Positions 2,935 through 63,647 of a stretch of 64,000 bases of DNA are shown piece after piece. Both the position numbers and the translations under genes were made by a program. The stretch spans positions 186,001 through 250,000 of the IMG/VR virus record IMGVR_UViG_3300018080_000098, one strand, 5' to 3'. A model generated the notes under the pieces. The model was not told where the DNA came from, did not search any database, and saw only the letters and a list, made by a program, of their open reading frames with translations. Positions within the stretch are counted from its first letter, which is position 1, and each line of letters opens with the position of its first letter.

Positions 2935-3008
2935 GGGGCCATAGCTCAATTCGGGAGAGCCCTGGCTTTGCAAGCCAGCTGTTGGGGGTTCGAGTCCCCC
3001 TGGCTCCA
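2935..3008 (+). tRNA. tRNA-Ala(TGC)
   Basis: GGGGCCA/TGGCTCC acceptor with G3:U70; anticodon loop TTTGCAA; TTCGAGT T-loop. Confidence 0.93.
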
Positions 3009-3026
3009 TCTTGTAAAACATTCTGC

Positions 3027-3578
3027 ATGAAAGAAATCTACGAGTTCGTCCGCGATACAGAAGCTGAAATCCAGCGCCGCCTCGGCAAGCCCAATCTCAC
3101 CGTCGAGCTCGTCCCCCGAAGCTGCTGGTGCTCCAACGTCCGCACCGTCGCCACCAAAGACCAGTGGGACACGCTACGCAAAGCAACCTACAAACACTAC
3201 AGCCACCGCTGCGCCGTGTGCGGCGGTAAAGGTCCCAAGTGGCCCGTCGAATGCCACGAGATGTGGCAGTACGATATCCTGCCCAAAGGCAACACACAGA
3301 AGCTCCGATACCTCATTGCCCTGTGCCCCAGCTGCCATGAGGTAAAACATTTCGGGCGAGCTCAAATGGTAGGCCGCGCAGAAGTAGCACTGTCACATTT
3401 GATGGCGATCAATGAGTGGCCTCAAGAAGAAGCCGTGTGGTATCTGCAACAAGTTTCCAAGATTTTTGGGGCCCGCAGCGAAATCGTAGATTGGGCACTA
3501 GACCTCAGCTGGGTAGGCAGCCGCTTCGACATTAAACTCGATACAACACATAGAGGAGGGCACCGTGGAATGGACTGA
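3027..3578 (+). CDS. HNH-like endonuclease
   Basis: ELVPRSCW..NVR, CAVCG, CHEMWQY and LCPSCHEVKH motifs; start moved downstream of the tRNA. Confidence 0.7.
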   Translation: MKEIYEFVRDTEAEIQRRLGKPNLTVELVPRSCWCSNVRTVATKDQWDTLRKATYKHYSHRCAVCGGKGPKWPVECHEMWQYDILPKGNTQKLRYLIALCPSCHEVKHFGRAQMVGRAEVALSHLMAINEWPQEEAVWYLQQVSKIFGARSEIVDWALDLSWVGSRFDIKLDTTHRGGHRGMD

Positions 3579-3847
3579 AACCGATAATCCACTTCGCGTC
3601 AAAGTTACCGCGAAGCTAGGAAGCGCCGACATCGAAGTAGAGCTCAACTGGAACGCCGCATTCTACGTACTCACTGAGTTCGTCAACGGCAGCGACCCCC
3701 AGTACTTCACCGAGGACGCTGTAAACCTTCTCAGAGCTCGAGCTCAGCAAATCCAAGATGCCATCGACATGCGCGATGGAAATGTGTAAACAGCTTCCCA
3801 TCTTGTAAAACACTACAGGAAGACCTTCACCATCACAGGAGAAAACC

Positions 3848-4504
3848 ATGAAACGTATCGCAGCTCCCGCCTTAACTCTTTTCATGCTCGCCACCCTGGC
3901 AGCGTGCCCACCTCCCAACCCTAACGACCCCAAGGCCAAGTACGCCGCAGGGTACACCATCGTCACCTACGGCAAGTTCGTTATCCAAACCGCCCACGCA
4001 GGCTTCAAGGGCTTCGTAGCTATCAAACACAATGAGTGCAACGACCTCGTCTGTGTCAAACTCCACCCCGACAAGAAATCCGAAGCCTACAAAACCTGCA
4101 TGACGCAGGACCACTCCGCCGTCGCAGAGTTCAAAAAGTGCTACGGAAAGCTCGGGCAAGCAGAAGCCATCATCGACAAGGCTGTTCCCCTCTGCCAATC
4201 TATCCTGAATGACATCAAGGATATCCTCGACCTCAAGGTCCAATACGACATCGCCAAAGAATCTGCCACCAAGAAACCCGAGGAGCTCAAGCAGTTCTGT
4301 GATACCGTCTTCCCCGCCAAGTCCGGAGACGAGTACGAGAAGTGCCAGAAGGGCGAGCTTGTCAAAAAATTCGACTACATGGCAGCCTTTAAGGGCCGTG
4401 CCTGTAGCGGCTACTACGCTTTCGCCTTCGTCCCCGCACCGTACAACAAGTACACCGACCCCGTCCGTATGTGGTTCAAGGGCTACGGCGGCAACTGCAA
4501 ATAG
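3848..4504 (+). CDS. Cys-rich lipoprotein
   Basis: MKR + hydrophobic stretch + LAAC lipobox; AGGAG SD. Confidence 0.6.
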   Translation: MKRIAAPALTLFMLATLAACPPPNPNDPKAKYAAGYTIVTYGKFVIQTAHAGFKGFVAIKHNECNDLVCVKLHPDKKSEAYKTCMTQDHSAVAEFKKCYGKLGQAEAIIDKAVPLCQSILNDIKDILDLKVQYDIAKESATKKPEELKQFCDTVFPAKSGDEYEKCQKGELVKKFDYMAAFKGRACSGYYAFAFVPAPYNKYTDPVRMWFKGYGGNCK

Positions 4505-4802
4505 GAGACCACGATGACAATTAAACTAGGCAACAAAGTCAAAGATGCCATCACAGGTTTCACTGGCATTGCCATCTCGAAAACAAAGTACCTGCACGGT
4601 TGCACTCAATGGGGGCTCCGCAGCCAGGAGCTCCACGAAGGCAAACCAATCGCAGTTCAGTGGTTCGACGAGCCACGCCTCGAGGTTCTGGAAGCGTCCG
4701 AACCTGTGCGCACCGAGGGTAGCGATGCGCGTCCTGGTGGACCCCGTTCTACACCTCCCAGTCGCTCCCCTTCAACCGCGGGCTGACTCAAACAAAAAGT
4801 TC

Positions 4803-4831
4803 TTGACAGAGTCCAGAAATTCCTGTACGTT
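4803..4831 (+). promoter_or_regulatory. sigma70-like promoter for the ncRNA/tRNA/SRP cluster
   Basis: TTGACA-17nt-TACGTT. Confidence 0.65.
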
Positions 4832-4844
4832 GGTTGCTGGAAAT

Positions 4845-4988
4845 CCTCGGAAGGTCGATTGGCCGACCGGGGTCAGCGGCCCTGCCCAACCGGTGCTGCG
4901 ATACCACCGAGCAGGAGGCGCAAAGGGCAGTCGCAGCTGTCCGGATGCGTCGGTCTCAGGTTGCCGTATTGGGCGACGTTAAGCGAGG
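4845..4988 (+). ncRNA. candidate structured RNA of unknown class
   Basis: nested pairings CCTCG/CGAGG, GGCCGAC/GTCGGTC, CCGG/CCGG, CTGCCC/GGGCAG between promoter and tRNA. Confidence 0.4.
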
Positions 4989-5010
4989 CTCGCTGAAACT
5001 TTAGTTTGCT

Positions 5011-5082
5011 TGCGGAGTGGAGCAGAGGCAGCTCGCGTGGCTCATAACCACGAGGTCGGCGGTTCGATCCCGCCCTCCGCTA
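5011..5082 (+). tRNA. tRNA-Met(CAT), initiator-like
   Basis: CTCATAA loop; unpaired 1:72; GTGGAGCAG D-arm as in fMet; anticodon stem ends TGG/CCA rather than GGG/CCC. Confidence 0.85.
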
Positions 5083-5085
5083 ATA

Positions 5086-5132
5086 CTCTCGTGAACCCCG
5101 TCAGGGTCGGAAGGCAGCAGCGGTAGCGAGAG
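5086..5132 (+). ncRNA. ffs: minimal SRP (4.5S-type) RNA, domain IV/helix 8
   Basis: GTGAACCCCGTCAGGGTCGGAAGGCAGCAGCGG matches the CAGG-nnn-GGAA-nnn-AGCAG Ffh-binding motif; closed by CTCTCG/CGAGAG. Confidence 0.8.
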
Positions 5133-5145
5133 CTCGCAAAAACTC

Positions 5146-5655
5146 ATGACTAAAAAGTATTTCTACCACGTTTCTCCCAACCACAACATCCACAAAGGCA
5201 CTTCCGCTTCCTGCACTCTCTGCAAACGAGAGAAGGTGCATCGAAAAAAAGCTTCCAAAGCCACCACCAAGACAAGCGGTAAAAAAGGTGGCAAGAAGTC
5301 CAGCAAACGCGCCAAGAAAGTTCGCCACGACAAAGCTACTCCACGCACCTGCTCCGTTTGTGGAAAGAAGATAGACCGGAAGAACAAGAGCGGTCTCTGC
5401 ATCGTTCACTACAACGAACAACGAAACGTCGCCAAGAAAAAGGCCGACGCCTCTCGTAAGCAGTGCAGCATGGAAGGCTGTACCAACCTTCTTGGGCCCA
5501 CCAACCAATCCGGTTTGTGCTTCAAGTGCTTCGCGAAATCAGACGCCTGGAACCAGCGACGCAAAACGCACGGTGAGTGGGTCACCTCGGCTATTCGTGC
5601 TCGAGGTATCAAAGACCCCACTGACGATGCTCCCGAGCCCCCTTCCCGTTCCTAG
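5146..5655 (+). CDS. basic, Cys-rich (repeated Zn-finger-like) protein
   Basis: Lys-rich linker; two C..C...N.SGLC repeats. Confidence 0.55.
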   Translation: MTKKYFYHVSPNHNIHKGTSASCTLCKREKVHRKKASKATTKTSGKKGGKKSSKRAKKVRHDKATPRTCSVCGKKIDRKNKSGLCIVHYNEQRNVAKKKADASRKQCSMEGCTNLLGPTNQSGLCFKCFAKSDAWNQRRKTHGEWVTSAIRARGIKDPTDDAPEPPSRS

Positions 5656-5701
5656 CAAGTTACTCTATGTCAACCACAGTAACTTTTGAAGGAGCTCCAT
5701 C

Positions 5702-6325
5702 ATGGCAGCCGTTCCTGTACTAGACGAGTATCTGATCAACTTTTGGCAGCAGGTCTGCGACATCGCTGTAGACTACAGTGAGGTTGATACGTTTCGAGCA
5801 GACGTTCACGCTCGGGACAAGCTTATCAACGTGCTGTGGAGCACACAGCGTGACGACCTTATCACGTTGTTCAGCGCTGGGAAGACAGCGGCCGACAACA
5901 TCATCGACGCCGTACGAGGAGCTACACCTCGGCCCACTCTCACTACACCTGTAGAAGCGGGCGACATCCCCATCTACCCCTTAGAGTTCTCTGTGTCCCC
6001 GAATTACGGTCAGGTGCTCACGTACTCGTACAACCGCGAGGACTTCAATCCAGACGTCGTCCCTACACCACCTCTTCCTACCTGGTGGTATATCGGCTCA
6101 GACCTATACCGCATGGTCCTGCGTTCCGACGATTACATCCTCAATGCTTCTCCCATCGAAGCTGTATCTGGTACCACTCTGGGTGTGTGGGGGGCTAATC
6201 TGTGCTACGGTGTGATCAGTCTTGAGTTGCTGCACAATGGCTACGCTTCTGCTCGAGCTCAGGCAGAAGCAGCGTCCATCCAGATCGTCTCCATTCTCAA
6301 CGAGAAGTCTCGCAGGAACCGCTAG
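5702..6325 (+). CDS. hypothetical protein, possibly virion-associated
   Basis: 207-aa ORF with AGGAG SD, preceded by AAGTTACTCTAT motif. Confidence 0.5.
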   Translation: MAAVPVLDEYLINFWQQVCDIAVDYSEVDTFRADVHARDKLINVLWSTQRDDLITLFSAGKTAADNIIDAVRGATPRPTLTTPVEAGDIPIYPLEFSVSPNYGQVLTYSYNREDFNPDVVPTPPLPTWWYIGSDLYRMVLRSDDYILNASPIEAVSGTTLGVWGANLCYGVISLELLHNGYASARAQAEAASIQIVSILNEKSRRNR

Positions 6326-7712: not shown

Positions 7713-8282
7713 ATGGACCACCAGAAATCAGTCAGCACTAGCAAGTTCCTCAGCCTCGTGCTGCGCCACAAGCCAGAAACCATCGGGCTCCAGCTCGACC
7801 CAGGAGGCTGGGCCGACGTCGACGAGCTCCTGCGTAAGTGTGGTCGAGCTCGCCGCGGTCGAAATATCACACGAGCCGATCTCGAAGAAGTCGTCGCCAC
7901 CAACAACAAAAAACGTTTCGCGTTTAGCGAAGACGGCCGAAAAATACGCGCCAGTCAAGGCCACTCCCTCCCCGTCGACCTGGGCTACGAGCCCATCGAA
8001 CCTCCCGTTCACCTCTGGCACGGTACCGCCCGTCGTTTCCTAGGTAGCATATTTGAGAAGGGTCTGCTCAAGATGAACCGACAACACGTCCATCTTTCCG
8101 CAGACTTTCACACGGCGTACACAGTAGGCCAACGTCACGGCAAGCCTGTTGTGTTCCGTGTGCACGCACTCGATATGTACAACGATGGCCACAGCTTTTT
8201 CCTGTCTGCTAACGAAGTGTGGTTGACAGATCGGGTACCCGTGAGGTATCTGACGAAGGAGCCCGATGGTCATCCAACGTAG
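7713..8282 (+). CDS. kptA: RNA 2'-phosphotransferase (Tpt1/KptA)
   Basis: SKFLSLVLRHKP, KKRF, IRASQGHS, LWHGT, RQHVHLS, NEVWLTDRVP. Confidence 0.93.
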   Translation: MDHQKSVSTSKFLSLVLRHKPETIGLQLDPGGWADVDELLRKCGRARRGRNITRADLEEVVATNNKKRFAFSEDGRKIRASQGHSLPVDLGYEPIEPPVHLWHGTARRFLGSIFEKGLLKMNRQHVHLSADFHTAYTVGQRHGKPVVFRVHALDMYNDGHSFFLSANEVWLTDRVPVRYLTKEPDGHPT

Positions 8283-29602: not shown

Positions 29603-29604
29603 AT

Positions 29605-29679
29605 TGGGAGTGATGGGACTTGAACCCACGTCTCTGGGATCCTTAAACCTCAGCGCTTGAGCCGCTCAGCTACACTCCC
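29605..29679 (-). tRNA. tRNA-like RNA with enlarged anticodon loop (GTTTAAGGAT)
   Basis: GGGAGTG/CACTCCC acceptor, normal D and T arms, 10-nt anticodon loop. Confidence 0.7.
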
Positions 29680-29684
29680 ATAGT

Positions 29685-40983: not shown

Positions 40984-41128
40984 ATCCAGTAGAAGAAAGG
41001 AGGTACCCCATGAAGCGTTTTGCATTAAACAACCTCTAGCCCTCCCGTTTGTGTCCGGTTGGCGGTATGCCAGAGGTAGCGTTCCAAGTTCGTTGGCATC
41101 GGCTTGGGGAGTTAAACCGGACAACCTT

Positions 41129-41207
41129 GGGCGGTTAGCGAAGTGGCTTTACGCGGCGCCCTTACAAGGCGTGACATTTTACACTGGTTCGAGTCCAGTA
41201 CCGCCCA
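41129..41207 (+). tRNA. tRNA-Val(TAC) with atypical 10-nt variable region
   Basis: GGGCGGT/ACCGCCC-A acceptor; GCGCC CTTACAA GGCGT anticodon arm. Confidence 0.8.
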
Positions 41208-41820
41208 TCCTATTACGAAAGGAGCATTACGATGTCGATGCAAGTTGTACTCCGCAAAGGTCTCTACACCGACGACAAAGGAAAGACCGTCGTCTACGTA
41301 GTCAATAATGTTTACGAAAGGGGTTGGGATCAGGTAGACTTCGACGTTGTCCGCAGCGGGGCGGAACGTTCATGGCCGCTCGAAAGATTTCAGCGTCAGT
41401 TCCCCAACCGCGTCACCAAAATCGAAATTTCCTTCGAGTAATCCTATGAGTAGATTCGAAGCTCACGGTCCCGCGCACTCCCTCGCCTACGGCGTCGACC
41501 ACATGCCGTTCATCGGCACCTTCCTGCAAGTGTGGGGCAATACTGAGTATGACATGCCCGATGGAGACAACATCGTGGTAGACAAGCATCAAGTATCCGT
41601 TGCTCACATCATCGATGCAGCACAGCGGTACGACATACCGCTTGACTTGGAGAAGCTCCACCGCAATCTTGGAACCACTCCAGACATCGAACGTCTGCGG
41701 GAGTTCGGACTACTGCGATGAATCGGTACACTATTGACCAAGGTGGTACATGGAAACGTTTCACTCACTGTGATCTCTGCCGCAAGAAACTAGATGAACC
41801 GTTCGAAGCGAAGGTGACCA

Positions 41821-42343: not shown

Positions 42344-42372
42344 TTGACATATTTTTCTAGACGTCGTAAAGT
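42344..42372 (+). promoter_or_regulatory. sigma70-like promoter of nadE-pncB
   Basis: TTGACA-17nt-TAAAGT. Confidence 0.65.
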
Positions 42373-42409
42373 CGCGACAGCAACATTACGAAGCACTGAG
42401 AGGTGTCAG

Positions 42410-43237
42410 ATGCAGAATATTTGGAACGAGATCACGGGGAAGCTCAGAAACTTTTTTCACAGCAGAGGGTTCACCAAGGCGGTGATCGGGGGCTCGGGAG
42501 GCATCGACTCCTCAGTAGTGATCTGCCTCGCAGTAGAAGCACTTGGAGCGAAGAATGTCCTCGTCGCTATGATGCCCGCTCCTCACTCGAGTGAGGGTAG
42601 CGTAACGGACACTTTGAAGCTGTGCTCCAACTGGGGTGTGACGCCGGTAACTCTTCCCATCGAGCGGCTGATGGGGGAGTTCAACACGTCGCTCGCGAAC
42701 ATCAGCAACATCGTTACGCCTCCGCTGGGCAACTTTCCGAAGGTGGACGGTGCGTTCACGTACGAGAATATTCAGGCGCGCATCCGCATGGTTCTCCTGA
42801 TGGCGCTCAGCAATGAGTACGGCTGTCTCGTGTTGAACACCTGCAACAAGTCGGAGGACTACACCGGCTATTGCACACTCTACGGAGACTCATGTGGTGC
42901 CATCGCGCCTATCGGGGACCTCTACAAGGGGGAGGTCTATGAGCTCGCGGAGTGGATCACCTACAACCCTGTACTCCCCAATATCCCCTTTGCCATTCTG
43001 CACAAGGCGCCCACGGCAGAGCTCCGTGAAGGGCAATTGGACTCCGACGAAATTCCTCCCTACGAGGAGCTCGACCCGATCCTCACACACCTTCTCGATG
43101 AAGGGTTGACTGTGGACTCCGTGGTCACGTTGGGCCACGACGCCAACACGGTGGCGAAGGTGCAGCACCTCATGAACGGTTCGGGGTACAAAAGGGACCA
43201 GTCGGCTCCCGTGCTCAAGCTCGAGAGGAAGGGCTGA
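42410..43237 (+). CDS. nadE: NH3-dependent NAD+ synthetase
   Basis: SGGIDSS, ENIQARIRM, NKSEDYTGYCTLYGD, PIGDLYK, KAPTAELREGQLD. Confidence 0.93.
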   Translation: MQNIWNEITGKLRNFFHSRGFTKAVIGGSGGIDSSVVICLAVEALGAKNVLVAMMPAPHSSEGSVTDTLKLCSNWGVTPVTLPIERLMGEFNTSLANISNIVTPPLGNFPKVDGAFTYENIQARIRMVLLMALSNEYGCLVLNTCNKSEDYTGYCTLYGDSCGAIAPIGDLYKGEVYELAEWITYNPVLPNIPFAILHKAPTAELREGQLDSDEIPPYEELDPILTHLLDEGLTVDSVVTLGHDANTVAKVQHLMNGSGYKRDQSAPVLKLERKG

Positions 43238-44415
43238 TGCTCAAGAGTATCCTCGACACCGACCTCTACAAGCTCACGATGCAGCAGGCCGTGCATCGGC
43301 TGTACCCGTGGGCAGAAGCTGAGTACACGTTCATCAATCGGGGAGGAACAGAATTCCCACAAGGGTTCGCGGCAAAGCTTCGTCTTGCTATTGAGGAGCT
43401 TGCCAGTCTGCGACTTACTAGGGAGGAGAAGACCTACCTGGCAGCCACGTGCCCTTACTTGACGCCAGTGTATCTCGATTTCCTGCGTTCTTATCGCTTC
43501 AACCCTTCGGAGGTTCACATTTCACAGCCTCCGCACGGAAACCTTTCCGTGTCTGTTAGGGGACCTTGGTACAGAACGATTTTGTGGGAAGTTCCCCTAA
43601 TGGCGATGATCAGCGAGCTCTACTTCCAGGAGACAATGGCTCGCGCCAACCCACGTCCAGTGCGGCAGGAAACCAACACGCTCAAGGGAGAATCCTTTGT
43701 TAAAAGCGGAGCGCGGTTGGTGGACTTCGGTACACGGCGGCGCTTCTCTTGTCAGAACCAGGACGAGGTCCTCTACGACCTGCTCGCTGTCACTGGCAGC
43801 ACCCTGGTTGGAACGAGCAACGTGTACTTCGCACGAAAATACGGCATCAAGCCTATCGGTACTCATGCGCACGAGTGGTTCATGTATCACGGCGCTATCA
43901 ACGGGTACCGGGCAGCCAACCCGACCGCACTCGATGCTTGGATGCGTGTGTACCAAGGCGCCCTGGGCATCGCGCTCACAGACACGTATACCACGAAGGC
44001 GTTCTTCTCCATTTTCGACGCAGTGAAATCTAGGCTGTTTGACGGTGCCCGTCACGATTCCGGTGACCCCTTCGATTTCGCAGACGCCGCCGTCGCACAC
44101 TACGAAAAGCTGCTCATCGATCCTTTCTCCAAAACGTCAGTGTTTTCTGATGGTATCTCCTCCACAGACACGGTTGCTCGACTGCAGCGACACTGTGCAG
44201 GAAGAATCAAGACGTCATTCGGTATCGGCACATTCCTGACCAATGACGTGGGTGTCACACCACTCAACATCGTTATCAAGATGACGTCCTGTCGCGAGCA
44301 TCCCAATAACCGGTGGGTACCCACCGTCAAGCTGTCGGATGCCGAAGGGAAGCACACAGGTGACAAGGCAGAAGTCAAGCACTGTCTGGACGTGGTCAGC
44401 CGAATCGCTCCGTAG
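43237..44415 (+). CDS. pncB: nicotinate phosphoribosyltransferase
   Basis: SILDTDLYKLTM, DFGTRRRFS, GTSNV, GTHAHEW, ALTDT, RHDSGDP, FGIGT, KLSD. Confidence 0.95.
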   Translation: MLKSILDTDLYKLTMQQAVHRLYPWAEAEYTFINRGGTEFPQGFAAKLRLAIEELASLRLTREEKTYLAATCPYLTPVYLDFLRSYRFNPSEVHISQPPHGNLSVSVRGPWYRTILWEVPLMAMISELYFQETMARANPRPVRQETNTLKGESFVKSGARLVDFGTRRRFSCQNQDEVLYDLLAVTGSTLVGTSNVYFARKYGIKPIGTHAHEWFMYHGAINGYRAANPTALDAWMRVYQGALGIALTDTYTTKAFFSIFDAVKSRLFDGARHDSGDPFDFADAAVAHYEKLLIDPFSKTSVFSDGISSTDTVARLQRHCAGRIKTSFGIGTFLTNDVGVTPLNIVIKMTSCREHPNNRWVPTVKLSDAEGKHTGDKAEVKHCLDVVSRIAP

Positions 44416-57016: not shown

Positions 57017-57090
57017 GGGCACGTAGCTCAATTGGTCAGAGCGACGGTCTCATAAACCGTGGGTTGCAGGATCGTACCCTGCCGTGCCCA
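57017..57090 (+). tRNA. tRNA with CAT anticodon (Ile2 or Met)
   Basis: GGGCACG/CGTGCCC-A acceptor; ACGGT CTCATAA ACCGT arm; variant T-loop ATCGTAC. Confidence 0.85.
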
Positions 57091-57471
57091 TTAAGGAATG
57101 TTCATATCTGGATGATGAACTTCCATATGACAGTTTGCGCATAGCATCTCACATTTTAGCACTTCCTCTTCCAAGCGCTCACGTTTTGTGTTTGCCAAGT
57201 GACGGCTATCCAATTTGAATTTTTTTGTTGAAGGGTCCTTGTGGTGAAAAACTAGCGCGGCGTAATTTTTGTCATAACCACAGCTACTACATTTCCCACC
57301 GAAGTATTTCACTATCATTTTTCGTCTTCGCACACCACGCTCTTTTTGCCTCGCGTAGGTTTGGTACGCCTTATTGGTGACCACACACTTGCATTTGTTG
57401 GAGCAGTATTTACTTTGTCGTCCTGTAAGGGATTTGTTACAAACAACGCACTTTTTACCATTGGGTGCCAT
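57091..57471 (-). CDS. HNH endonuclease inserted in tRNA cluster
   Basis: GGKCSSCGY...LVFHHKDP...KCEMLCANCHMEVH. Confidence 0.8.
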   Translation of the reverse strand: MAPNGKKCVVCNKSLTGRQSKYCSNKCKCVVTNKAYQTYARQKERGVRRRKMIVKYFGGKCSSCGYDKNYAALVFHHKDPSTKKFKLDSRHLANTKRERLEEEVLKCEMLCANCHMEVHHPDMNIP

Positions 57472-57611
57472 AGATACGGTTCCTTTCTTTGCTGTGTTAT
57501 ACTCTAACTAGATTATGCGGGTTAACATAACCAGGCTACTCGCTTTTGCATCATCCCTCGGTTCGATTCCCCCTTGACATATCTATCGTATCGTTCATAG
57601 GGGACTAGTCT

Positions 57612-57697
57612 GCTACTGTGGCGTAATTGGCAGCCGCGCCAGACTAAGGATCTGGTGGACCTTTGTGTCCGTGGGAGTTCGAGTCTCCCCAGTAGCA
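57612..57697 (+). tRNA. tRNA-Leu(AAG)
   Basis: CCAGA CTAAGGA TCTGG; long variable arm; A73. Confidence 0.88.
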
Positions 57698-57700
57698 TCC

Positions 57701-57785
57701 GCGACTGTGGTGGAATGGTAGACACGCATGGTTCAGGTCCATGTGAGCCCTTGTGCTCGTGAGAGTTCGACTCTCTCCAGTCGCA
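57701..57785 (+). tRNA. tRNA-Leu(CAG)
   Basis: CATGG TTCAGGT CCATG; long variable arm. Confidence 0.9.
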
Positions 57786-63508: not shown

Positions 63509-63647
63509 GATTTCGAGGACTGGAAGGTAAGTACAGAAAAACAATGATAGCTCAGTTGGTTGAGCGTCGGTATTGAGAACCGAAGGTCGCGGGTTCAAAT
63601 CCCGCTCCTTGTTACTTCGCCATTTACCTTCATACTACCTCGGAACT
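63509..63647 (+). ncRNA. Y-RNA-like unit 1: closing stem around an unpermuted tRNA fold
   Basis: TTCGAGG-ACT-GGAAGGTAAGT / ATTTACCTTC-ATACTA-CCTCGGA enclosing a cloverleaf at 63541-63612. Confidence 0.7.

Follow-up and report, generated by a model that had tools for sequence, protein, structure and literature searches.

Does a huge bacteriophage supply its own signal recognition particle (SRP) RNA, and if so, what would an SRP RNA of only 47 nt do during infection? These questions are raised by a hairpin at positions 5086-5132 (+) of a 64,000-nt stretch of DNA, referred to below as the window, which comprises bases 186001-250000 of IMG/VR virus record IMGVR_UViG_3300018080_000098. A first-pass annotation, made from the letters of the window, described this hairpin as a phage-encoded minimal SRP RNA that lies three nucleotides after an initiator-like transfer RNA (tRNA) and that retains the Ffh-binding symmetric loop and the GGAA tetraloop without the long distal helix. 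From sequence comparisons, we conclude that the phage does carry a gene for a minimal SRP RNA and that this gene is under selection.

The window is part of a complete, terminally repeated viral genome (349,793 bp with direct terminal repeats; completeness rating of 100%), which has 53.7% G+C and 18 tRNA genes detected by ARAGORN. Matches to PHROG families in this genome include a DNA polymerase, both topoisomerase II subunits, a helicase, and a virion structural/tail-spike protein, and the element is thus indeed phage-encoded. No DNA polymerase of a GenBank isolate exceeds 27% identity to the one encoded here, implying that the source is a huge phage without cultured relatives. A megablast search with 20 kb and a blastn search with the locus against cultured relatives returned matches to tRNA-Met genes only. 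No SRP54 GTPase or M domain (Ffh, FtsY) was found in the genome of this phage, nor were an RNase P RNA, a CCA-adding enzyme (PolyA_pol domain), or a match to the terminase Pfam model. Shine-Dalgarno cores are enriched in the phage (50% vs 15% background), which, together with sigma-70-like promoters, implies that the host uses standard signals.

When scanned against Rfam with cmscan, the hairpin matched RF00169 (Bacteria_small_SRP, clan CL00003) at 5087-5131 (+) with 43.2 bits compared to a gathering score of 40. Searching the whole window with all 4227 families gave an E-value of 5.6e-6, and a local search gave 5.3e-8. The alignment spans model positions 23-67 of 97, contains zero indels over 45 positions, and carries the posterior symbol '*' throughout. 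Besides tRNAs, Bacteria_small_SRP is the single Rfam match in the window, and this is the sole RF00169 match in the 349,793-bp genome. Thus, the comparison to Bacteria_small_SRP proposed in the first-pass annotation yielded an Rfam SRP match above the curated threshold. The minimum-free-energy fold of 5084-5134 (-18.1 kcal/mol) has the SRP domain-IV layout, with the following parts.

5086-5132, + strand: mini SRP RNA, a 47-nt domain-IV hairpin (RF00169 match, fold, and covariation of the inner helices across 10 mini-hairpins)
5086-5092 / 5126-5132, + strand: closing stem of 7 bp (fold)
5093-5097 / 5124-5125, + strand: asymmetric loop, GAACC on the 5' side and UA on the 3' side (fold; the A/C-rich 5' side is aligned to the model AAc)
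5098-5101 / 5120-5123, + strand: 4-bp helix (fold)
5102-5105 / 5116-5119, + strand: symmetric loop CAGG / AGCA, unpaired, the site of the Ffh/SRP54 M domain (sequence, cmscan, and fold)
5106-5108 / 5113-5115, + strand: 3-bp helix GUC / GGC (fold)
5109-5112, + strand: GGAA tetraloop, of the GNRA type, the FtsY recruitment site (cmscan and fold)

The folding energy of the hairpin is ordinary (z = -1.2), and its significance therefore rests on the covariance-model score and not on stability. The distal extension of helix 5, which contains the GTPase docking site, is absent; model positions 1-22 and 68-97 are unmatched, and the tRNA occupies the 5' side. The leader and the sequence behind the hairpin could together have supplied a concealed distal helix, but this was rejected, as their pairing is no better than in shuffles. 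Because a distal helix was not encountered, we call the element a minimal variant rather than a standard member of the SRP RNA family. Many bacteria, belonging to several phyla, have exactly the 22-nt core of this hairpin, and the matches listed include Acidimicrobiia, Planctomycetota, Clostridia, Weissella, Balneolaceae, and others. Combined, the score and fold confirm the earlier description of a 47-nt minimal hairpin, and the alignments support its interpretation as a phage-borne SRP RNA that is cut down to the Ffh-binding hairpin and adjoins an initiator-like tRNA. The tRNA and the spacer that precede the hairpin are as follows.

5011-5082, + strand: tRNA-Met(CAT) of the initiator type, with CCA not encoded (Rfam tRNA match of 58.2 bits; ARAGORN 5010-5083)
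5083-5085, + strand: 3-nt spacer AUA, between discriminator A5082 and C5086 (sequence)

The sequence and Rfam alignment of this tRNA show a U1.U72 mismatch (U5011 opposite U5081), which cmscan flags as a non-standard pair, and G2:C71, C3:G70, G4:C69, discriminator A73, and A11:U24 are all present. The list of formylase determinants used here is that of E. coli tRNA-fMet. Two of the three consecutive G-C pairs of the anticodon stem (29:41, 30:40, and 31:39) are found, 29:41 being U-A; since one of these pairs is missing, the tRNA is termed initiator-like and not a canonical or proven initiator. The placement of the hairpin three nucleotides after an initiator-like tRNA was thereby confirmed, on the strength of the AUA spacer, the U1.U72 mismatch, and the formylase determinants, though with two rather than three anticodon-stem G-C pairs. 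The closest phage tRNAs are the annotated tRNA-Met of Rhodobacter, Sinorhizobium, and Caulobacter phages. The 3' CCA is encoded in none of 16 checked tRNAs of this phage (in the window, those at 2935-3008, 5011-5082, 40911-41210, 57017-57785, and 63540-63615). As the phage also lacks a CCA-adding enzyme, all of these tRNAs would need 3' trimming, by endonucleases or exonucleases, and CCA addition by the host. Release of the hairpin through tRNA 3' processing is plausible from this arrangement.

Is the hairpin a singular occurrence? Searching IMG/VR with the universal 22-nt motif, in which any base was allowed in the helices, gave 23 loci in four groups. A second scan, of IMG/VR and JGI metagenomes, contained a tRNA T-loop anchor 20-50 nt upstream and relaxed the tetraloop to GNNA. 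The patterns fixed 17-18 motif bases (20-21 in the metagenome scan), and the JGI metagenomes gave 109 loci, including the contig of this genome itself. Eight sequence-distinct minimal families with hairpins of 42-53 nt were recognized, among them that of the window. IMG/VR holds two further families. In one (L013), a 44-nt minimal hairpin with its own closing stem lies between tRNA-Glu and tRNA-Arg, in a record (G002) that represents ≈9% of its genome. In the other (L168/L169), tRNA-Ala(TGC) is followed after 4 nt by a 53-nt hairpin with a GAAA loop in an array of 28 tRNAs, and the records are an estimated 14-20% complete. The gap between tRNA and hairpin is 1-4 nt in seven of the eight families and 24 nt in L013, and another tRNA lies close behind the hairpin in five of the seven other families. 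Arrays containing mini-hairpins have up to 29 tRNAs in 4.3 kb. The Rfam SRP scores of the other families, at 33-40 bits, range from sub-threshold to threshold and confirm that these families belong to the SRP clan. Thus, the minimal SRP hairpin following a tRNA is a member of a recurrent class, which extends the initial claim. In GenBank phages, the hairpins of the window and L013 gave only chance matches in coding regions.

A few loci of the first scan match coding sequence by chance. SRP RNAs of the large or archaeal type, whose match came through an internal T-loop-like GGTTCGAGCCC, were set aside, as was a terminator-like chance match (L221). Separately, sub-threshold matches to YrlA, a Y-RNA-like family, were seen at L173:190-320 and at L181:491-628 and 3808-3945 (35-57 bits compared to a gathering score of 69), within dense tRNA arrays that hold mini-SRP hairpins.

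Full-length SRP RNAs also occur in viral records. A full-length small SRP RNA of 93 nt (57.7 bits) stands in the tRNA arrays of two related huge-phage records, G003 with 497 kb and G004 with 372 kb. Another, of 96 nt (58.7 bits), stands in or beside a tRNA array of G005, a 290-kb record classed as a provirus. All three match model positions 1-97, and no gene for an SRP54-type GTPase was found in G002-G005. Class-A RNase P RNA was found in the first two records, with 247 bits in each case (L289, G003:C1:324315-324653; L288, G004:C1:48292-48630), and in the mini-hairpin contig L223, where it scores 280 bits (L223:174-545) and comes directly after the mini-SRP hairpin and tRNA-Trp. Between tRNA-Met (1037-1109) and the SRP RNA (1501-1593) of G003, the stretch L163:1150-1480 contains two tandem units of ≈190 nt. 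Each reads like a circularly permuted tRNA, with the T-arm and 3' acceptor strand followed, after 4-5 nt, by the 5' acceptor strand, D-arm, and anticodon arm. Both units have CACTCGGCGTTGA(T/C)CAA at their end, a motif that is also seen ahead of the SRP RNA.

Two additional groups of loci were obtained. The first, from the first scan, consists of about a dozen small IMG/VR contigs, viral or proviral, with SRP RNA genes at most a few hundred bases from the contig end (L005, L018, and L021, and also L006, L011, L014, L019, L020, L023, and L024). In L005, L018, and L021, the 3' part, after AGCAGC, is close to the published 27-nt att core of phage phiEf11, and integration at ffs, the SRP RNA gene, may be commoner than the single described case. 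In the second group, from the metagenomes, a tRNA is followed immediately by a full-length SRP RNA. SRP RNAs of ≈72-76 nt were also seen straight after the CCA of tRNA-Ala(GGC) (L176, L183, L192, L196, L201, L210, L226, L243, L264, and L265), with tRNA-Val or tRNA-Leu following within a few to ≈20 nt. The contigs with these ≈72-76-nt RNAs have 63-69% G+C, few tRNAs, and one sub-threshold T-box-like match, and by these features they look cellular.

Covariation provides evidence of selection on the hairpin structure. We aligned ten distinct sequences (the window, L013, L169, L207, L269, L173, L181, L223, L272, and L190) and counted pairs in both inner helices, where the search pattern had N at the variable positions. 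In these helices, 100% of cells pair compared to 77% in shuffles, and changes on both sides are found in 12 cells, a number reached by none of 500 shuffles. One pair takes four types (C-G, G-C, A-U, and U-A). When the partner is shifted by 1-3 columns, pairing falls to 35-48%. The closing stems, of 6-10 bp, have no sequence in common between families. The asymmetric loop, which the pattern did not constrain, is A/C-rich in most families (GAAC, AAC, ACC, and CAA), and the two pattern-free bases of the tetraloop complete GNRA in all ten sequences (GGAA in eight, GAAA in one, and GGGA in one). Retention of GNRA in all ten, with its middle bases left free, argues for more than passive sequestration of Ffh. 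Moreover, the repeated loss of both distal strands in register, combined with a new closing stem, is not expected from random truncation.

Transcription of the hairpin was considered next to its flanks and the neighboring genes, which contain the following features.

4803-4831, + strand: predicted sigma-70-like promoter, TTGACA, 17-nt spacer, TACGTT, behind an A/T-rich run ending in TTC (class defined by regular expression)
4832-5010, + strand: non-coding leader of ≈170 nt, G+C-rich, with several hairpins (no Rfam match at E up to 10)
5133-5145, + strand: A-rich single-stranded tail GCUCGCAAAAACUC before the next open reading frame (ORF), with no terminator-like site on the + strand
5146-5655, + strand: ORF of 169 aa, basic and Cys-rich, with a weak coding score of 0.097, possibly on the hairpin transcript
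681-1235: SpoU-type methylase (domain match)
2102-2656: DSPc-like phosphatase (domain match)
2982-3578 and 57091-57471 (-): HNH endonucleases adjoining tRNA genes (domain match)
7713-8279: Tpt1/KptA RNA 2'-phosphotransferase (domain match)

The predicted transcript start is at ≈4838-4840. A regular-expression scan found about 40 genome sites of the form tttTTC-TTGACA-(15-19 nt)-TAnnnT, many of them followed by ACGTAAAG, and the promoter at 4803-4831 falls in this class; its -10 hexamer TACGTT also occurs at another site of the class. A stricter built-in promoter scan did not list 4803-4831. By its sequence, the class looks like the promoter of the phage for host RNA polymerase. Examples are found at genome positions 2298, 4477, 7420, 14423, 345453, and 347788 (-); the sites are densest near the genome ends on the minus strand, where they are frequently trailed by GTCGGACG.

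The interval 4787-5145 is non-coding, and an overlapping ORF at 4545-4982 has a negative codon-usage score. The fold of the leader or whole locus is not better than that of shuffles (z = -1.19). The 3' half of the hairpin has a 75% complementary counterpart in the leader, at 4889-4908. An imperfect direct repeat of 13 nt (85%; 4988-5000 / 5132-5144, GCTCGCTGAAACT / GCTCGCAAAAACT) brackets the tRNA and hairpin at a spacing of 144 nt and could be the mark of a mobile cassette or chance. The product of ORF 5146-5655 has no Pfam or PHROG match and no relatives in viral contigs; kinship to the HNH endonuclease at 57091-57471 was considered and rejected for want of significant similarity. Overall, the domain matches indicate a neighborhood rich in RNA-handling and mobile genes.

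How might such an RNA act? We propose that it would be transcribed, jointly with the initiator-type tRNA, from the early-type sigma-70-like promoter, and that its 5' end would be made by the host tRNA 3'-end machinery cutting after discriminator A5082. As the tRNAs lack CCA, an RNase Z/BN-type cut plus CCA addition by the host would be needed. Consistent with such processing, SRP RNA genes abut tRNA genes in the cell-like contigs, and the SpoU methylase and Tpt1/KptA genes lie near the hairpin. In E. coli, the Ffh M domain binds both internal loops of domain IV. The 47-nt hairpin would offer the M domain of host Ffh its symmetric loop CAGG/AGCA and its A/C-rich asymmetric loop; the GGAA tetraloop, the part that recruits FtsY, is retained, and the distal helix, to which the Ffh-FtsY GTPases dock in order to be activated, is missing. 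Host Ffh would be loaded into a phage-specified SRP, and co-translational membrane targeting would be kept or retuned over a long infection, with the hairpin as a low-cost substitute for host 4.5S RNA. Because the phage brings no Ffh or FtsY, the partner would be that of the host, and a small RNA that occupies host Ffh is the most economical reading. A supportive role is favored because other huge phages hold full-length versions, because the mini versions travel with pro-translation RNAs, including the RNase P RNA of L223, and because the FtsY-recruiting tetraloop is retained. A tRNA-processed mini SRP RNA that loads host Ffh in a supportive or retuning role is the reading that we prefer, and, with the uncertainty about binding included, we consider the case for and against it to be evenly balanced.

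Several observations weigh against this proposal. The RF00169 score is only 3 bits over the threshold, though for less than half of the model, and the conservation of bases that were fixed in the search patterns provides no independent evidence. The 22-nt core, which is shared across phyla, does not single out a host whose Ffh it would fit. A phage origin of six of the eight families is no more than likely, as judged indirectly from neighboring genes: ORFs beside the other arrays are without a Pfam family, one of them matches a PHROG endolysin family, an HNH endonuclease (36-50% identity) is common to this phage and L169, L223, and L181, and a DSPc-like phosphatase is common to this phage and L248. 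Moreover, genome comparisons indicate that the element is sporadic rather than core. A clade survey by DNA polymerase, used as a single sequence or a profile, gave six IMG/VR contigs only. In the closest sizeable relative (G001; 260 kb, 74% complete, and 60% DNA polymerase identity), neither an RF00169 match nor a homologue of the tRNA plus hairpin was found, and the same was true of two further fragments related by DNA polymerase. The one 19-nt match in these relatives was rejected as a counterpart of the hairpin, as it does not form one. The hairpin is also absent from three huge phages that share Tpt1. The locus was found in DNA runs only (sediment, seawater, and wetland) and in no RNA run, and the run contigs over the 2,001 bases at 4300-6300 represent tRNA-fMet/SRP genes of other organisms and short exact pieces of the phage, the latter from sediment and seawater runs. 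Finally, the effects of distal-stem truncation in E. coli favor an inhibitory over a supportive role.

That last point leads to the strongest competitor, in which the hairpin would act as a decoy or poison that traps host Ffh and FtsY in slowly recycling complexes and thereby shuts down the biogenesis of membrane and secretory proteins during host take-over. The distal helix is missing in all eight families, in which the Ffh-binding and FtsY-recruiting parts are retained, and a minimal size that arose repeatedly and independently could reflect selection against the distal part. In the E. coli complex, the tetraloop tethers FtsY early, and the GTPase pair then moves to the distal stem, where an RNA base enters the active site, hydrolysis of GTP is triggered, and the signal sequence is handed over to the translocon (PMC5454536). 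A summary of Ataide 2011 in 10.1101/378745 states that blunt truncations of the distal stem by more than 14 bp attenuate GTPase activation and abolish cargo transport in vitro. Poisoning fits poorly with the full-length SRP RNAs of other huge phages, whose distal strands suit a supplied function, and with the company of the mini-hairpins, which travel with tRNAs and, in L223, with RNase P RNA; besides, phages need membrane proteins themselves, and a 4.5S RNA reduced to domain IV was reported by Batey et al. in 2000 to sustain E. coli growth. We consider a decoy unlikely, while placing it ahead of the remaining alternatives.

An SRP-like hairpin could also serve a purpose unconnected with Ffh, as a signal for processing or stability at the end of the tRNA transcript, as a cap-like hairpin at the 5' end of the downstream messenger RNA, or as a place where a phage protein binds. 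The hairpin is not followed by a terminator and an ORF begins 13 nt downstream, as would suit a role in the transcript, and the precursor of E. coli 4.5S RNA is itself a substrate of RNase P. Other structured RNAs are at home in tRNA arrays, as illustrated by the YrlA-like matches and by GOLLD, whose occurrence there is cited in PMC9569102. Yet a generic hairpin has no need of the exact symmetric and asymmetric loop sequences together with GNRA, in five other families a tRNA and not an ORF follows the hairpin, and the protein encoded downstream has no membrane-protein features suggestive of an SRP tethered to its messenger RNA. A use of this kind is improbable in our judgment.

Less credible still, and in our view very improbable, is a decaying relic, that is, a functionless remnant of a full-length phage SRP RNA or of a captured host fragment. 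Such decay would account for the sporadic occurrence among relatives, the margin of just 3 bits over the Rfam threshold, and the absence of the locus from RNA runs. It is a poor explanation for the in-register loss of both distal strands and the gain of a fresh 7-bp closing stem, for the same outcome in eight families with covarying helices and intact loops, and for 45 matched positions aligned without indels. An attP-type fragment of host ffs that restores the gene upon integration, suggested by the temperate Enterococcus phage phiEf11, which integrates into ffs (PMC12540744), and by the dozen or so small contigs with SRP RNA genes near their ends, three of which resemble the phiEf11 core, is close to refuted, since an att core duplicates the 3' part of the RNA gene, whereas the phage element lacks this part and has both strands of the apical hairpin, the 350-kb genome has direct terminal repeats with no integrase among the neighbors tested, and the same element recurs within tRNA arrays.

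The preferred reading, a mini SRP RNA that would load host Ffh, can be placed against known systems. The phage RNA has the apical domain-IV loops and GGAA of bacterial small (4.5S) SRP RNA, and scores above the curated cut-off of RF00169; it differs in its length (47 nt vs ≈90-115 nt), in the missing long stem with the GTPase docking site, in being encoded by a virus, and in its position 3 nt after a tRNA. Fragments of E. coli 4.5S domain IV of ≈43-49 nt, which have nearly the same boundaries as the phage hairpin and are likewise closed by a few pairs beneath the asymmetric loop, were reportedly used by Batey et al. in 2000 and 2001 for structure and binding studies of the Ffh M domain. Those fragments were engineered, whereas the phage hairpin and its counterparts in seven other families are natural. 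Like the SRP RNAs of G003, G004, and G005, the hairpin is virus-borne, stands in or beside a tRNA array (in G003, among tRNA-Met(CAT) genes), and is unaccompanied by an SRP54-type gene. By contrast, their RNAs are 93-96 nt with distal strands, and G003 and G004 hold an RNase P RNA, of which this phage has none.

As a small structured RNA that is co-located, and presumably co-processed, with phage tRNAs, the hairpin resembles the T4 species 1 and 2 RNAs (RNA C and D), phage tmRNAs, GOLLD, and Y-RNA-like RNAs, yet none of these stable non-tRNA RNAs of phage tRNA clusters is an SRP RNA. To our knowledge, the T4 species 1 and 2 RNAs have no assigned family. The phiEf11 attP/attB in ffs (PMC12540744) likewise links a phage to the SRP RNA gene, but there a 27-nt core from the 3' part of ffs serves a temperate phage, whereas here the apical hairpin forms a unit of its own in a terminally redundant 350-kb genome. 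The cell-like contigs share the placement of an SRP RNA straight after a tRNA, sometimes with a second tRNA behind; they differ in that their RNAs, of ≈72-76 nt or full length, retain a long stem, and in having few tRNAs. An SRP RNA wedged against tRNAs in this manner implies that tRNA processing would define its ends. Full-text searches, whose coverage was incomplete, retrieved no report of a phage-encoded SRP RNA, the phiEf11 attachment site being the sole link between a phage and ffs. The RNA family is known, and the viral carrier, the small size, and the tRNA-punctuated setting are new.

On a broader and more tentative view, which we think somewhat less probable than the preferred reading of this one hairpin, huge phages would carry an undescribed class of tRNA-punctuated, domain-IV-only mini SRP RNAs of 42-53 nt that are excised by tRNA-processing enzymes and reprogram the host SRP, either as a streamlined substitute that needs no distal GTPase-docking stem or as a dominant-negative that locks Ffh and FtsY. 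The recurrence of mini-hairpins in phage-like tRNA arrays suggests that phages may tamper with the sending of host proteins to the membrane. SRP RNA is, as far as we know, among the few RNAs common to all cells, and the role of its long stem is known almost wholly from E. coli. The element thus bears on whether phages manipulate co-translational protein targeting and on the minimal SRP RNA that works, or poisons, in vivo. If the proposal is correct, viral take-over would extend to co-translational membrane targeting, and the phages would provide a natural experiment on how little SRP RNA suffices. The list of universal stable RNAs in huge phages is widened from tRNAs and tmRNA to SRP RNA and RNase P RNA.

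Further genes were noted in other parts of the window. The stretches 34491-35996 and 42344-44415 encode, respectively, a eukaryotic-type topoisomerase IB catalytic core (Pfam E 3e-12) and a salvage pair of NAD synthase and nicotinate phosphoribosyltransferase. Odd tRNA-like genes lie at 29604-29680 (-), 33640-33718 (-), 33018-33093 (-), and 63901-63954 (+), among which ARAGORN calls one 4-base anticodon (taag) and one 2-base anticodon. Their Rfam tRNA scores are 49.7 bits at 29605-29679 and 42.6 bits at 33018-33093, with a partial match at 63901-63954, and these genes could be frameshift-suppressor-like or degenerate tRNAs.

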